From Bugula neritina (lineage: Eukaryota > Animalia > Bryozoa): a stretch of DNA of 64,000 nucleotides. The notes under the pieces were generated by a model that did not search any database, was not told where the DNA came from, and worked only from the letters and a program-made list of their open reading frames with translations. Made by a program: the position numbers and the translations under genes. Positions 55,260 to 64,000 of the stretch are shown piece by piece. The stretch spans positions 8,402,741 through 8,466,740 of the forward strand of contig OZ037768.1 in assembly GCA_964035545.1 (NCBI GenBank), in the 5' to 3' direction. Within the stretch, counting starts at the first letter, position 1. The number at the start of each line of letters is the position of its first letter.

Positions 55260-58200
55260 CTGCTCTCTCTGTTCACCCTCCTGTCTCTGTGTTTATTCAT
55301 CTGGAATTACTAAGATTACCAAGTGACCTACAAATGATTGATGCAGACTATTTACTATATTTGACTCCTTGCATTGACATTGCTACGGCATGACAACAGA
55401 AAGTCATCACCTCTATTATTTGCTGATTAGTTACACAAACAGATCAATAAAATTATGGAATATTCTCATGATTTTCAGGTTCTCCAGGGATTCGGCTCAA
55501 TTGTCATTTTATTAAGTTGGGTTCATTATTGAAAATGGTGCTTGAGACAACCCTGAGAAAATTTATCATCCTTTCTTCTCCAATTACTCTTAAACAAAAA
55601 ACTATTGACATTAATCATTATTGGATTACACTGGCTCAATAATCTGCTGCTATTAAACTTTGTATAAAAATCATGTATTTGTTTACTTGTGTCTCAGCAT
55701 TGATATTGTTTGCAACTGGTTGAAACATTATTATAGGTTATAAATAGTTTTTTGGCAATAGGTCAATACTTTTGACTTCAATACACAAATGCATCATTGA
55801 ATACAATAATTTGTGGCATAGGCAATTATACAATGGCATTATTATATTTATTATTCCACCTTGACTTTACTTTCATTTTCAACTTAAAATGTTAACAAAT
55901 AATATAAATTAATAATAATGGCCAATAAGATAAAAGCTGTTGACATGTATTTATAATAATAAACAATGTTATATTAAAAACCAAGGCTGAAAGCAGGCTG
56001 TGGCCATTATTCTGCTTGGAGTTAATTATTTTGACTCTATAATTACAACCCGGGACATTATTAGTGTAGTTTCAATATAAGTTTATTAGTTTAACTTTGA
56101 AATAACTGCTTCATATTCAGTGCTAAGGCGAGTTCAACTTAGTAAAAGCCAAGGTTTAGCTAAACACTTTCCAGCTTATGACTCATGATTATTGATTTGC
56201 CCTTTCATAACTGTACGGCTCACAAAGGCTAATTAACAGCCATATAAACGTAATTGACAGAAAAAAAGTTGAACAATATCTTGGCTTTGATGTTACAGCT
56301 ATTAATTTGTTGCATAACAACAGAAAATTTGAAATGCAAGCGCTGCCGCTGCCCAAGCTCTAGTGTATGTCAATACTCATTCTTCCCAGGTGGCAGTTTA
56401 AGTCTACTGTACTGCTCATTCTGTCCCAATGCAACTGTCATGTCTGCTAACTTATCGTACTTGTTATCAGCTTATATGGCATATTATAGCAGGGATTAGA
56501 TATTTTCTAGAAACCATCATAACAATACAAGTCTCATGGACGCAGTAATTCTGGATATAGCATAGGTATATAAATAATATAGTACAAGTGTCTGGGGGGG
56601 GGGGGGGGGCTGAGTGCTACACCCCATCAATATCACTGCTTCTATATAATAAATCAGTAAAGCTGTAACTGCTTCTAATCATATACTTTACAGGGGTTTT
56701 CTATAGTCTACGCATTATCTTCCTATAATGCTATTAAACAGGTCATTAAAAATTCAGGGATAGCTGTTGCAGATCTTCCCACGGTTCAATAATTAGGCAG
56801 CATTATAACGCAGGTCCCAGTGGTGCCGTAATAGCACTAGAATCACTCTTTATATTTGTATATTGACTTATGATACGCTATTGAGATAATTAATTACTGA
56901 CTAGAAGTTGTAATTTCCCACAATTCTTATCTAAAATCAGCAAGAGTACTGTAAATCAGCAGCCTTAGTATGAGGCTGGCAGCATTAATTCCTCCAACAG
57001 GAAAGTTTTTAATTGTTCCGATACTAGTTCTCACAGATTGAACAAAACATACTGTGACTTAGAACAGTGAGCCTGATTAAACTCTAATTTCTATCCCCTA
57101 TCGCTTTAAAGTTTTAAAAATAGAGCTTTTTGATTCATGATTAAAGTTTGACAGTTGAAATTTAAATAATTTGCATGAGCGTGTTAAAGTAATTAAATAG
57201 GAAACGAGACTTGGTGACTGGCTTATAAGCTGTTTATCTATATTTCGTTATAGCAGACGTGTCACTTATCCCTTTATCTTCTTTTATGAAAAGTAAAATA
57301 CGTGTATGTTTGGGTTGACAGATACAAATGATATATAGCAGGTTGTAATGATTGTTATGTAACCCCATCCAGGGGCCGAAACAAACTCAGAACTTTACCT
57401 CATTACCATAGTGTGTGCTGGCTTATACTGTTTTAGATTATTATAATTATTATAATAAAATCTAAATAAGGGTCCAGTGTTAGTAATTAAAACAATTCGG
57501 CAGTTGAGGTGAATAATATGAATGTATTATATAATCTTTAGTTTGACTGTTGAAGCAAAGCAAAAGTTGAAACAATACAAATTATATTATTACTATTTGT
57601 ATTTAAAAAATATTATTATTTTGCAAGTAGCACTAGATATAAACTATAAAATAATTATAGTGTATTATGTTATATTACATTATGTTATATCATAATACAA
57701 GAAAATGACAACAGATTTTATGCTAAGTGTTATAATAATTTGATCTGTCATTAATTACAGTTCAACAGATTTTAGGGACTAATGTTTTGGCCCAGACAGG
57801 TATTGCATAGTAAGTACCTGCTATACAGCTTTGTATGATAGCGATGAGTCATCTTTTTATTACAGCAGATACCTTGTATTATTGTCAAAGCAGCAGATGG
57901 AGGGCCAGGAATGTTTATAAATTGTTGCAGAATGCATGATGTCAAATACATACAATATTTTAGTTTGGTTTTGAGATTATTGGTCACAATATTAACTTTA
58001 TCAAAACTAGCGCCTACTAATGAGGTTACTATTTATGAGGTATTTAATGTAGCCTTAATTAATTTTAAAATATTAACTTCTATTGTGATGCTAAAGTTTT
58101 TGTAAATATAGAATAACATTTGTGAAGACTAACAGTCACATTATTGAAAAATGTACATGCTATAAACCAAATTAAACTGATTGACTTCATATTGTAACAA

Positions 58201-59909
58201 TAACAGTCCAAAGATGGCCAACTGGAACTTTTAATAATGGTTTGAATTTTCATATTTTAGTAAAAAACAGAGCTATTTGTTACTTTTGGCTATAAATCAC
58301 AGTTCAATATCAAAGTTTTTCAAGTTTTGGAAAATCATACTTTACGTTGAGATATGCTGCATAATTGGAGTCCAAAAAGCAATTGCCTTGAACCAGTAGG
58401 CTTCATTTATGCAGAAAATATAGCAATATTTCCCTAAGGAGATTCCTTTGTTGTTTATATAAAATTTAACCGTCCTATTTGGCTTTAAGTTTTGCTGGAG
58501 TTAAGCAAAAGCACTGTAAACAAAGCTCTGTTGCTTTACTAAAATAAAAATAACATTTTCAAGGAATATGCTTACAAAATTTAGTAATCTGGAAGTTGCA
58601 TTTAAGAAATGTTGTTATATCTAATATACAGTTTTTGAGAAGACAAATGTATTTTAAGAGCTTTGCGGTATGCTACTGAGTGCTGAAAGAAACTCTTTAT
58701 GTTATCTGGTTATACCTGATGTGTAATGATGATGCAACTTGTAGGTAGCTACCCAAATAATATCTTCAACGTTTTAATCTTCACCTGAAGAATAAATGTT
58801 TTTGTTAAAAGGCACAGGTTGCCAATTACGAGTTGAAACTTTTTATTTATAACTGGCTATGTACTTATTGCCTCATAGTAATAGGTGCAATGAATCAACG
58901 TGCCACATTGTCCTCAACAAGAGATAAAGATCTCATTTTCCACCAACACTACTGCGACATACAACTGGATTATATAGCAGCTATTAGTGGTTTCTACCGC
59001 AACGTGGCTTGCTCTAATTAATATTAAGTGTATGTTAGTCTATTAAATAGATATAGGCTGATTTCATGAATCCAAATATCTTGAAAAACAGTTTTGGCTG
59101 CCAAAATCTGCGATACTGGCACTGGATTGCTATATATTTCTGATAATAATTTTATAAAAAAGTAATTAGTATTTTGTTGATATCACAAGGAAAATGAGAT
59201 ACTCAGCGCTATAGCTATCAGCATTAGATAAACAGCATTTTAATAATAGTAGTACCAGATGACATATTTATTGCTTTCTCAGTTTCAATTTATTTCACAG
59301 TATGGAGGCGGGTCAAGCAACTTTACATGTAAGATTTCAAATCTCAAATAAGTCAATCATTTCAATAATGACAAACTTCTGGTTCTGATTTAATACTGTA
59401 ATATCATACAGTATATGCCATAAAGCAGTATATGCCATATGGAGTATAATTATCCTATTTTGTAGTTTGCTATATTATTGTTCTTCAGACCAGACCATAC
59501 CCATCTAATTAACATAATAATGCACACGCATTGAAATTAAGCTGAAACCATGAGCAAGGTGTCAAAAGATATAATTATAGCATGAGGCTGGCCCCTGGAT
59601 CTAAGGGTACAGACTCATGTCTGATAGTGTTTGTTCTACTCTTTAGAACTATTGTAACAGATGAGCTTTTAATGTCTGCAACCACGACTAAACTCTTATA
59701 ATCTAGATAAGTTATCAGATCAGGAACAATGGAAAAGACAGTAAAACTTGTTTGGCTGCCATAATTTTTGTATCTATTTGTTATTTTTGTATACTGTATA
59801 ATATGAATATCCCTAATGCCATGCTTTAACTTAAATATAATATTCAAACTGCAAATACAATTATCTTGGGCAATTGTTCCTGCTTTTAATTATTTCTAAT
59901 AATTTTTTA

Positions 59910-59974
59910 AACACACAAAAAAATGCCTCATATTTATTTTGCTATTTCTATAATAACTATATAGATATTTTATT
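59910..59974 (-). promoter_or_regulatory. Candidate polyadenylation signal for the minus-strand BH3-only transcript
   Basis: Minus strand AATAAA (59974-59969), AATAAA (59938-59933), then TTTTTTTGTGTGTTT U/GU-rich downstream element. Confidence 0.5.
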
Positions 59975-60219
59975 ATAGTAACATAGACACACTCATCAAA
60001 TGAGTTTAGCACCTTCAATTGTTTTAATGGCTTCATAGAATATAAGATTAATATTGAATACTTAATTCATATAATAAAAGGGCAGTCTAACTGACTTATT
60101 GTCATAGCAGTAAGAAGAGTAAAGCTGTTCAACATAAAATAATAACATTTGTACACAACAACAACAATAACATAAATATTATATACATAAATATTAATAT
60201 ATTAATATCGTAATGAGAT

Positions 60220-60240
60220 TGAGATCAGTAGAAAACTGAT
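60220..60240 (-). promoter_or_regulatory. Extended bantam microRNA target site
   Basis: Plus strand TGAGATCA-GTA-GAAAACTGAT, so the minus strand pairs with bantam nt 1-8 and 13-22 (UGAGAUCAUUGUGAAAACUGAUU as recalled for lophotrochozoans). Confidence 0.65.
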
Positions 60241-63143
60241 AAAGTGAAAATAACACAATTTTAATTAAAGTAGTTTTTACAAATATAAACACTGTACTGA
60301 TGAAAAATATATTACAGCATATTGTTTAATAATATCAAATACAATATCTTTAAATACAAGACTTTAGTTGAGCTAAAAATAGTTGCAAGAAGTAATCTCT
60401 GGAACTGGATTGCTCAAACTGAGTTAAATAATTCAAATGATTGTAAAAAAAAGCAGTCCTTCAGCAATTCTGACTATGAATCTAAATGTATATATAAAAA
60501 AAACTTTGAATATGTTAGTCAATTTGAATACAGCTTTTAAGGCTAAGAACTGAATTGTTTGTTATTGCATGTTAATTCTCCTAGCCTTCTGGTGTGTATT
60601 GAATAGTATAACCAGAAGTTGAATATTGCAATAACTTGCAGTAGTTAAGTATTGCACTAGTCAATTTCACTGTGCCACTTTGACTATTGCTGCAAGTCCT
60701 TGTGAAATACGCCCAGCTGAATTTTATTAACTTCATGGCCATCTTTGGTCAAGAACTAGCAATTAGCCAACTATTAACTTGGATAAACCCTCTTTGCAGG
60801 AATGCATTTCTCAATCTAAAATATAAAAGGACAGTGGTTAGTACTATAATATTTTGCAGAGTCACCTGTTTATTCAAGCATTGTTACCTCAAATTCAAAG
60901 TTAATTGTTATCATATTGCAGTGTTTGTTGTTAGGATTATATAAATTAGATCAGCTACAGTTTTTAAAGTTGTCACTTGGTAACTTATATTTTCAGCTTT
61001 TATTAGATTTTGTGTCAATATTTTGCAATGTGAGATGCCTCCAAACTTAGCGAGTGTCACTAAATGATAAGAATAGTTTATATAAGTCAGGATTATTGTC
61101 ATAGATAGCAGCTTCGATTGTGCCAGCTTTGTTTCAATGCTGGCCTTGTGTTTTGTTTGTGGGTTGTGCTCTTAAAAAATACTAAAGGGTGTGGGATGTA
61201 AATGCAAGCAAATGGGTTTCTTTGTTATTAAAAGTTGGCTGTTGAACAAGCTAGGCAAAAAAGTCAATTATGGACATGAAACACCAACTTGCCTGAACTT
61301 GCCCAAAAAACTTAACCGTTATTGTTTAATACCTGGCTAGGAAGTTATGGCATGTGGTTAGCAGTTGGTGATGGCTATTCCATAGCTTCATGGCCACAAC
61401 TAGCAAATGTTGACTACCAAAACCTAAACTCATAAAAACACTGTGGTTTCTCGGTTCTTAGAGAAGTTGCTAGGGGTAATGTGAATGCACTTAAGAACCA
61501 CCTAGCAAGGCCAGTGCAAGTCTTCATAGTATTGACGTTTTGTTGTGACAGGAGAGTTTGCCTATTGCCAAAGAAGGTGAAGCAAGGGTCATGTTATATT
61601 TACTATGAACTTTATGACATCTGCTCTCTTATCAATCACCAATAGTGATACTTACTCATAGCTATAATATACTCCTGCATGTTTATGCTTTTTAGCTTGC
61701 ATAGCTGATATCAGTAGTTCTATTTTAGAACAATATACATATGATATAAACAAAGTAGTATTGTTATTTAATTACCTTTCTAGCCTGATTACTAGCCTAG
61801 TTAATTATAATAAATAGCACTATATGCATATCAAACTATATCAATATATTGAGCTATATTATAACAACTACAGTAAGTTTCTATGATTGATATACATGAA
61901 TACTGTTGATATCAGCGTAATACAATTATTACCTAGCTAGCTATACTACACGATGGGCTTAATGAGTCACTGTTACAACTCAGAAGGTCATAGTCATGTG
62001 GAACTATTAGTAACCTTAGTGACCTTATATTATATAAAGTGTGAACTAAGCCACTGAATAATTAATTTAGAACCAGGAAAGTAACATTAAGTGTGCAACA
62101 CTTCCTAGTTGAAAACTCCCATAGAAATAAAGCATAGAAAAAGAAAGTCACTGAGTGCAATATAATAATATAGTCTGCAAGTAGACTCTAGTTTGTCATA
62201 ACGTGTTGTTTTATAAAGTTGCAGGGGCAGGTGAATAGAGAAGAATTAACAGCTGATTAAATCTACATCACTAACACATCACTTAGATATCTGTTGATAG
62301 TAAGATGCACCTATTAACACCATGTGGACAAACAATAGCAACCGTGATGTAACGCAGCACTAGCTGTGGCCTGGTACAATAGCAATAAACACAGACTCAG
62401 CGATGGTGGACAGTTACAGCATGAGGAGTGCACTCAGCACCCTAACCTTTTATTAGACAAGCTGTTGGCATGACTACGTCAACTTCTCATGACTGTTTTA
62501 TTAAAGCTTTTATAGCACTATGTATCAATATTTTAAGTTCAATTTTAATATTATTATTAATATTAATAAGCAAATAAAAACAGCATTTTGCATTTTTGAA
62601 GGCAGTTGAAGGGAAATTTTGCAAAAACTCGTTTTTAAATTAAAAATGGTGTAAAATAGTATGTTTTATTTTGAGAATTTCAGCCCACATTCTGAACCAA
62701 AATCTATAAACCAATTGAAATTTCTTCACTACCACATGTTCATTACAGAAAATAACTGGTTTTGCACTTACTAATAATATACTATAACAAACACACTAAT
62801 AGCTATACTATATTATATGCCTGTAGTATACTACACTGTGCTATATTGACCTGTTTTACTTCTTACTCTCACCTTTAACACACCCAACCCAAAATTTGAT
62901 AATAAAATTAAAGAACTTAGGCTATCTCAATCTCTCCACTACTGCTCCTTATAAATGCCTGATCTAGTGTCTTTTGCAAACCTTACAGATACAGGCTTTA
63001 TCAGTTTTTATTTTGCATATTCAATATTGGTTATTACTACAAAAACCAAACAAGTTTCAAATACAGCTGCATTTTATAGCAACAGATATTTATATAAAGT
63101 GTACTTACTTGAGATTCCATTTAAGTTGCACTCATCTCCTTCC

Positions 63144-63431
63144 TTATTCAATTAAAACATCGACTGTTAAAGCTATTCCTATACAAATGGCTGAGCAGAG
63201 CAGTACAGTTTTTAGCTCACTGAAAATTATATTTTGCTGATCAAATAAATCACGACGTCGTCGTTGCTGTTCGTCCAACGTATCTGCAACTATTTGCAAC
63301 TTGTTGCCAATGGCTTTGTACTGATCGTCTGGATTCGCCAGCCTGGGTGGCATCCCATTCTCCTCAATGTAAGGCATGTCAATAATGATTACTCGCAATG
63401 ACTCATATGGATCTGTAACTTGTCTGCACAT
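63144..63431 (-). CDS. Candidate BH3-only pro-apoptotic BCL-2 family protein with C-terminal membrane anchor
   Basis: 95-aa ORF, GC-richer than flanks. BH3 motif YKAIGNKLQIVADTLDEQQRRRR (I41,G42,L45,V48,A49,D50,L52) and hydrophobic tail TVLLCSAICIGIALTVDVLIE; no BH1/BH2 (no NWGR). Start could be M1, M19 or an upstream exon. Confidence 0.72.
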   Translation of the reverse strand: MCRQVTDPYESLRVIIIDMPYIEENGMPPRLANPDDQYKAIGNKLQIVADTLDEQQRRRRDLFDQQNIIFSELKTVLLCSAICIGIALTVDVLIE

Positions 63432-63576
63432 TATATTTAAAACCTGATGTTCTTATAAATATGCAGCGAAATGATGCTTAGTAAAAAGTTCGTTATTGTA
63501 AAGGTGATATCAGTTAGAATGCTAAATGTAATGTGTTGCCATCCCACCCTATTCGTGGTATTCATAGCCCGCTATA

Positions 63577-63668
63577 ACCACGTGGTCACGCTGTATCTGT
63601 ACGACTAGTTTTATGAAACAGCTGATTGGGAGGCGGAGCTTGTTTATGATGAGCAATAATAGTAAACA
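63577..63668 (-). promoter_or_regulatory. Candidate proximal promoter of the BH3-only gene
   Basis: Palindromic E-box ACCACGTGGT (63577-63586), CCAAT on minus strand (63625-63629), GC box (63628-63638), forkhead motifs TTGTTTAT (63640-63647) and GTAAACA (63662-63668), in a locally CpG-containing patch. Confidence 0.5.
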
Positions 63669-64000
63669 TGGAATTTCCCAGAAACCACAGGCAAGCTTAC
63701 GCTTATATAATCATTATGGCACATAATTTTCATGAAAAAATAATTATAATATTATGATGAAACAGCTAGGAAGTGATTTATTAATAAGAATTAAGACCTC
63801 ACAAGATTATGGATTATTCATGCCTTGTAGAAAAATTGCAGCTAGTGATTTTACTAATGATGGATAATTAATAACGAAATATAATAGATAATCACAGGTG
63901 ATTTTATTATTGATCCACAAGTGAAAAAAATCATAAAAAAACTAAAACTTGTATATAATTTATAGTGAAAATTCCTATCACTGTAGTTATAGTACTTTGT

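Follow-up and report, generated by a model that had tools for sequence, protein, structure and literature searches.

A candidate bantam microRNA site lies just beyond the mapped 3' end of a BH3-like gene in the bryozoan Bugula neritina

A 64,000-nucleotide (nt) stretch of the Bugula neritina genome (G000:C4:8402741-8466740), referred to here as the window, contains at positions 60220 to 60240 a minus-strand site that is complementary to bantam, a microRNA encoded by the same genome, and that lies just past the mapped 3' end of a small gene for a BH3-like protein. The analysis directly established the site and its cognate microRNA gene, showed the match to be unique and conserved in a sibling lineage, and yielded the gene model. 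We consider it possible that the site is functional, in an extended isoform of the gene that is minor or made only under some conditions; this reading stands marginally ahead of a chance match.

The plus strand at 60220-60240, read directly, is the 21-mer TGAGATCAGTAGAAAACTGAT, as the initial annotation of this DNA had it. The site and its local elements are as follows.

60220..60240, minus strand: bantam-complementary site, minus-strand RNA AUCAGUUUUCUACUGAUCUCA (from sequence, duplex energy, and genome-wide uniqueness)
60220..60227, minus strand: 8mer seed match UGAUCUCA, opposite bantam nt 1-8, kept in the sibling lineage
60228..60230, minus strand: central loop with the sole between-lineage substitution of the site (UAC here, AAC in the lineage of assembly GCA_010799875.2)
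60231..60240, minus strand: 3' pairing block AUCAGUUUUC, opposite bantam nt 13-22, -10.4 kcal/mol here
60180..60187, minus strand: Pumilio-type element UGUAUAUA, also present in the sibling lineage; on the RNA strand it follows the site by 33 nt

The RNA read from the minus strand offers a Watson-Crick match to bantam seed nt 2-8 and an A opposite nt 1 (60227-60220), and the pairing as a whole comprises nt 1-8 and nt 13-22; between these blocks nt 9 is in a U:C mismatch, nt 10-11 may pair, and nt 12 bulges out. The 8mer seed and the nt 13-22 pairing, initially proposed against the bantam sequence used in the initial annotation, thus hold against the genome-derived microRNA, with a predicted duplex energy of -23.5 kcal/mol versus -31.9 kcal/mol for a perfect complement. 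The mismatch or bulge proposed for nt 9-12 stands for the mismatched nt 9 and the bulged nt 12; nt 10-11 can optionally pair. Only seven 6-mer seed matches to bantam occur on the two strands of the 64-kb window, the second-best duplex reaching -13.4 kcal/mol. The Pumilio element had been placed correctly at 33 nt from the site (UGUAUAUA at 60187-60180); the window has roughly one motif of this type per 2.9 kb of each strand. Site and BH3-like open reading frame (ORF) share the minus strand, also as stated before. The sequences ATCAGT and ACTGAT in the two blocks of the site form a 6-bp palindrome (ATCAGT-N5-ACTGAT) by which the site folds on itself into a hairpin of about -5 kcal/mol; the seed block and the 3' block are therefore not fully independent.

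The bantam hairpin of this genome is located at G000:C5:3855576-3855655. It scores 53.1 bits (E = 1.8e-8) against Rfam family RF00727, whose gathering score of 61 it does not reach, although the alignment covers all 82 model positions; its fold has a z score of -3.1. The predicted 3p arm is UGAGAUCAUUAUGAAAACUGAUU. A genome-wide pattern search for the bantam sequence of the initial annotation gave one close relative, at C5:3855626, and an RF00727 search of the whole genome returned the C5 locus only, indicating a single bantam hairpin. The sequence of the initial annotation differs from the predicted 3p arm at nt 11 only, a position within the loop, and matches it everywhere else; a bantam with the 3' end that the pairing needs is thus encoded in this species. 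A literature search found no bryozoan small-RNA paper.

A chance match without function, i.e., an AT-rich palindromic 21-mer in non-transcribed or nascent sequence past a poly(A) site, is a serious contender, although we would not give it even odds. Under i.i.d. and first-order Markov models with the composition of the window, the expected number of occurrences, on both strands, of an architecture of 8 plus 10 matched nt with a spacer of 0-8 nt is 3.5-4.6e-5 in a window of this size and 0.12-0.16 in the genome. In the 216-Mb genome (~32% G+C) this architecture was observed twice only, in the bantam gene and at 60220-60240, which rules out a repeat or transposon origin of the site, and reversed and swapped-block control patterns gave no match genome-wide. 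The site is therefore very unlikely by chance within one 64-kb window, bearing out the earlier remark that eighteen matched bases would be improbable there. Genome-wide it is mildly unlikely (p ~0.13 for bantam alone) and becomes less striking once other recognisable microRNAs are counted, so that the weight of the match comes from its location. Given many microRNAs and 3,375 scanned windows, an expectation of 0.12-0.16 per genome for bantam alone, with other recognisable microRNAs uncounted, is not negligible and speaks for chance. The same is true of a relaxed 8-plus-8 search, in which four matches were found genome-wide, one of them the bantam gene and three (including the site) outside it, versus ~1 expected, and of the palindrome, which accounts for part of the match.

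Two further sequences bear on the same reading. One of the other two non-gene matches of the relaxed search is a bantam-like stretch of 20 nt, TGAGATCACTATGAAAACTG, at L002:1501-1522 (G000:C3:20810805-20810826, plus strand); it is identical to bantam at 19 of its first 20 nt, and the odd base would make a G:U pair in antisense RNA (-29.6 kcal/mol). Its first base is the second base of an intron (AAAG/GTGAGATC) in a DEAD-box helicase gene on the plus strand; the stretch lies in sense, has no hairpin (z -0.05), and does not match RF00727. Such a look-alike is far rarer than chance predicts. Lying in sense at an intron donor, it indicates that striking bantam look-alikes can exist without being target sites, which favors a chance origin of the site as well. 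In addition, a metagenome scan for site-carrying RNA contigs returned an identical 21-mer, ATCAGTTTTCAACTGATCTCA, in two contigs that are homologous to each other (L015:1562-1582 and L016:12499-12519) and share nothing but this 21-mer with the window. These copies of the A variant in unrelated metagenome DNA, which also count on the side of chance, could reflect coincidence, given the size of the database, or mark a site of the bantam type in a different organism.

Location, and with it the transcript model of the neighboring gene, is therefore central. Contigs of four public runs were placed on 59001-65000 of the window at a threshold of 95% likeness. The RNA contigs stem from another, ~7%-diverged lineage (12 of 13 variants match GCA_010799875.2), and they can show neither strand nor exact ends. 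The resulting features of the gene are listed below.

63452..63461, minus strand: TATA-like box TATTTATAAG, ~27 nt upstream of the first RNA-contig base (suggested by sequence)
63431-63144, minus strand: open frame of the BH3-like ORF, 95 amino acids (from translation)
63109..63430, minus strand: exon 1 with the BH3-like ORF, stop codon 35 nt before the donor (from RNA contigs)
60816..63108, minus strand: intron in the 3' untranslated region (UTR), GT..AG (from the contig joint in two RNA-type runs, X1 and X3, of two studies)
60296..60815, minus strand: terminal exon 2, all 3' UTR (from the X3 contig of 803 nt, which joins it to exon 1)
60325..60330, minus strand: ATTAAA, probable poly(A) signal of the main isoform, 28 nt upstream of the contig end at 60296

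The splice sites conform to consensus (donor AAG/GTAAGT, acceptor TTTTAG/; the joint is CT..AC on the plus strand). The 803-nt X3 contig, the only spliced RNA contig that reaches the region, ends exactly at 60296, and the GU-rich tract GUGUUUAUAUUUGU follows directly. Since AATAAA or ATTAAA is as infrequent here as 1 per 305 nt per strand, the ATTAAA at 60330-60325 very probably marks a true poly(A) site. Contig end, ATTAAA, and GU-rich tract taken together make 60296 very probably the poly(A) site of the main isoform, and the main mRNA seems to be ~840 nt long and to end near this position. The bantam site lies 56-76 nt past the mapped mRNA 3' end, on the sense strand. The initial annotation had assigned it to the mRNA, about 270 nt ahead of the poly(A) signal; this does not hold for the main isoform, whose mapped end is 56 nt short of the site, so that any action of the site would require an extended isoform. 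An RNA contig that stops short of the site in a standard poly(A) configuration is what a chance match would lead one to expect. A seed scan of the mapped 3' UTR found no bantam seed match, and no RNA contig covering the site was placed from the four public runs at 95% likeness. With this threshold and RNA runs diverged by ~7%, a minor extended isoform could have been missed, and contigs over the more diverged DNA downstream would stay out of view.

At the 5' end, the TATA-like box and the contigs starting at 63430 indicate that the mRNA probably starts near 63430, which makes the ATG at 63377 (77 amino acids) likelier than the ATG at 63431. The latter seemingly lies at or before the transcription start, and a 5-codon out-of-frame upstream ORF with its ATG at 63397 precedes the ATG at 63377. 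Searches for spliced mRNA contigs by exact protein products (the ORF, its parts, and two small ORFs of the UTR region) gave nothing or unspliced, genomic-type contigs (L010-L014 and L017-L019). The unspliced contigs from "symbiont metagenome" RNA-seq (L012, L013, L019) run colinear with the genome through intron and intergenic sequence alike; DNA carry-over is their best reading, and the coverage of run X14 is scattered, low-depth, DNA-like, and uninformative on transcription.

The 3' UTR intron has features of its own. About 60 nt at 62889-62949 are covered by very many short contigs with diverse loose ends in four runs, with a summed depth of up to ~35,000, and this is probably a dispersed, highly repeated or highly expressed element. 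Run X3 also has low-depth contigs (3-6x versus 16x for the exons) at 61000-61237 and 61276-61472; they overlap a locally conserved part of the intron (61400-61599, 97-99%) and could represent a retained intron or an alternative exon.

The ORF protein is 99% identical to the Bugula neritina hypothetical protein EB796_002428, but non-coding DNA is only 92-93% identical to the B. neritina assembly GCA_010799875.2; the window therefore comes from a sibling lineage of the species complex. Over 58126-63953, non-coding divergence from GCA_010799875.2 and from RNA-seq runs under the same label is ~7-8%, as would fit the cryptic species known in the B. neritina complex, and mapping of reads across lineages in this complex requires relaxed thresholds. 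Divergence by region is as follows.

Exon 1: 2.2%
Exon 2: 5.6%
Intron: 7.2%
60295-60183 (113 nt after the cleavage site, with site and Pumilio element): 4.4%
60182-59900: 11.2%
59899-58126: 9.1%

In the sibling lineage the site reads AUCAGUUUUCAACUGAUCUCA in four independent copies (L010, L011, L018, L019), with both blocks intact and the loop alone altered. The loop change lengthens the 3' pairing to nt 12-22 (3' block -12.0 kcal/mol) and leaves a 3:2 internal loop, with a duplex energy of -23.9 kcal/mol. Conservation of both blocks, which the initial annotation had proposed to check in related genomes, thus applies to the one sibling lineage compared; its statistical weight is low, since 18 nt would stay unchanged with a probability of 0.18-0.44 at 4-9% divergence, and it would support function only mildly. 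This statistical weakness again favors chance. Against chance, the blocks are intact although the loop and the immediate 5' flank have changed (two of the four bases directly 5' of the site differ between the lineages). The divergence of 4.4% over the 113 nt makes the site-bearing stretch as constrained as the UTR exon and is below that of the surrounding non-exonic DNA, and a Pumilio element adjoins the site. A chance match also leaves unexplained why the site is on the correct strand and <80 nt from the 3' end of a gene in the functional class classically tied to bantam.

How well the gene fits this class depends on its protein. The translation shows a BH3 pattern, I41-G-N-K-L45-Q-I-V48-A49-D50-T-L52 (I-x3-L-x2-V-A-D-x-L), a short and degenerate motif in which the four hydrophobic positions and the small residue followed by Asp are all present, and a C-terminal hydrophobic membrane anchor. 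The ORF has no Pfam match, an Atlas search gave no informative neighbor, and among 5.8 billion plus 1.84 billion proteins only its own orthologue was found, with no homologue beyond the species complex. Sequence homology to known BH3-only families, including EGL-1, was not detected. BH3-only proteins are often orphans, so that missing homology leaves the function possible. Bcl-2 family proteins are encoded in the genome (PF00452; best locus C4:4809881, 85.5 bits). At least three such loci are above the Pfam cut-off (C4:4809881, C5:9338436, and C4:13463480; L020, L021, and L022), and at C4:4809881 and C5:9338436 the BH4-to-BH2 region lies within a single exon, whose end is at the conserved GGW intron position. 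A complex predicted between ORF residues 27-72 and a Bcl-2 homologue (L020:1324-1797) reached an ipSAE of 0.51 (0.50-0.52 in three runs), versus 0.02 for the best of three controls; passes of this prediction at 0.60 or below are mistaken in most cases where the complex was not likely a priori, and the result was graded as weak support (partner pLDDT 58-60, run agreement of at least 84% of contacts, no interface given). From the motif and the predicted complex, we put the odds that the ORF is a BH3-only protein at roughly even.

Tandem alternative polyadenylation adds or removes microRNA sites, and it would offer the most economical functional model for the arrangement seen here. A small, TATA-driven gene would encode a tail-anchored BH3-like protein, with the bantam site just beyond its proximal poly(A) site. 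The short main mRNA ending near 60296 would escape bantam, while read-through transcripts to a distal cleavage site would carry the bantam site together with the adjoining Pumilio element. A possible distal end is near 60175, with an AAUAUA hexamer upstream and the tract UUGUUGUUGUUGUGU downstream. Bantam-loaded Argonaute would then bind the extended isoform by the 8mer seed together with 3' pairing over 10-11 bp, repressing the pro-death message. In this model we infer the extended isoform, the expression of bantam, the repression, and the pro-apoptotic role of the protein. The arrangement resembles tandem alternative polyadenylation elsewhere in that a microRNA site just distal to a proximal poly(A) site is isoform-specific; it differs from established cases in that the distal isoform in Bugula is proposed from the genomic arrangement.

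A close parallel is Caenorhabditis elegans egl-1, which is repressed by the miR-58 family (PMC5322734) and restrained by this bantam family, miR-35, and the Pumilio homologue PUF-8 (PMC5322734, PMC10565243). As in egl-1, a bantam-family seed site and a Pumilio/PUF element are found beside a small gene of the BH3-only type of death activator in a protostome. In contrast, the worm sites are of the seed type and lie inside a short, mapped 3' UTR (PMC5322734, PMC10565243), while the Bugula site, known from its sequence, is 56 nt past the mapped poly(A) site and has 10-11 bp of extra 3' pairing. In Drosophila, bantam represses hid (Brennecke et al. 2003, as cited in PMC12573233), and the candidate site would share with this pair the microRNA family, the anti-apoptotic logic, and a death activator as target. 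The hid gene differs in encoding a product that is an IAP antagonist, not a BH3-only protein, and in having several seed sites in its 3' UTR; in Bugula there is one site, with much more pairing, outside the main UTR. A third parallel, the BCL2L11 (BIM) trigger for miR-221/222 (PMC8653786), also has, within a BH3-only transcript, a seed together with extended 3' pairing, and suggests reciprocal control. It involves another microRNA and a site within the 3' UTR that was validated by CLASH and knockouts in mammalian cells, whereas the match in Bugula is one of geometry. The biology that had been cited for this locus, i.e., bantam and hid, the miR-58 family and egl-1 (PMC5322734), and BCL2L11-triggered degradation of miR-221/222 (PMC8653786), is thus sound. 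Plain repression has better precedent than target-directed microRNA degradation (TDMD): the miR-58 family, miR-35, and PUF-8 all restrain egl-1.

TDMD with mutual antagonism, in which an induced, extended BH3 mRNA would pair with bantam and direct the ZSWIM8-dependent destruction of bantam-loaded Argonaute, appears improbable to us. The geometry largely agrees with published criteria (PMC10899785), which call for an 8mer seed, at least 6 bp of contiguous 3' pairing from nt 12 or 13, and a central region that is unpaired at nt 9-10; the site has 10-11 bp of contiguous 3' pairing, its 3' energy of -10.4 to -12.0 kcal/mol is inside the range of validated triggers (-9.6 to -17.1 kcal/mol; PMC10899785), and the 3:2 internal loop of the sibling lineage is clean. 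A BH3-only mRNA also provides the precedent, as BCL2L11 triggers TDMD of miR-221/222 (PMC8653786). However, the site is beyond the mapped mRNA end, and a trigger must be abundant relative to a microRNA that is usually very abundant. In this lineage nt 10-11 are pairable, which narrows the loop. Bantam in Drosophila S2 cells is unchanged by Dora knockout and serves as a loading control (PMC10102002, PMC12573233), and in the Bugula genome the SWIM Pfam model finds a ZSWIM2-like locus only, with no ZSWIM8 orthologue identified by that model. An elaboration of the same idea, a bistable survival/death switch in which bantam would silence a BH3-only isoform that has a TDMD-grade site beside the Pumilio element, and distal poly(A) switching or gene induction would titrate or destroy bantam, is a long shot.

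The site could also be a conserved stem-loop or DNA palindrome that is unrelated to bantam, e.g., a hairpin bound by protein or an element in the downstream part of the poly(A)/termination zone, although we regard this as quite unlikely. A hairpin of 6-7 bp and about -5 kcal/mol is present in both lineages, the lone substitution falls in its loop, and the 113 nt after the cleavage site are conserved. Yet the conserved bantam match continues for 6 nt outside the palindrome (with GAAA and CTCA on its two sides), beyond what a hairpin would account for; no Rfam family scores above its threshold in the window, and wider folds are no better than shuffles (z -0.33, -0.65). A decayed or active plus-strand bantam paralogue, suggested by the resemblance of the plus strand to mature bantam in sense orientation and named in the initial annotation as the reading that would undo the target site, is effectively refuted: neither strand folds better than shuffles (z -0.33, -0.65), RF00727 has no match over 59900-60600 even at E<=10, no 5p-arm-like sequence is present and the flanks are unlike those of the true precursor, and the genome-wide RF00727 search gives the C5 locus alone.

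If the match is due to chance, near-perfect complementarity to a microRNA can arise accidentally beside a plausible gene, and transcript ends need to be mapped before target sites are called. If a functional bantam site in an extended isoform is the correct reading, the candidate would join a known pattern in which the bantam family controls a death activator. The pairing of the bantam family with death activators would then extend from flies and nematodes to a lophotrochozoan, which would argue for an ancient protostome circuit, and if the bistable switch were true, the link from bantam to BH3-only genes would be older than the split between Ecdysozoa and Lophotrochozoa. A functional site would also clearly exemplify, in nature, how tandem polyadenylation can gate a microRNA site, and it might turn out to be the first TDMD trigger for bantam. 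For Bryozoa, it would open a first functional approach to an orphan gene of the BH3-like kind.
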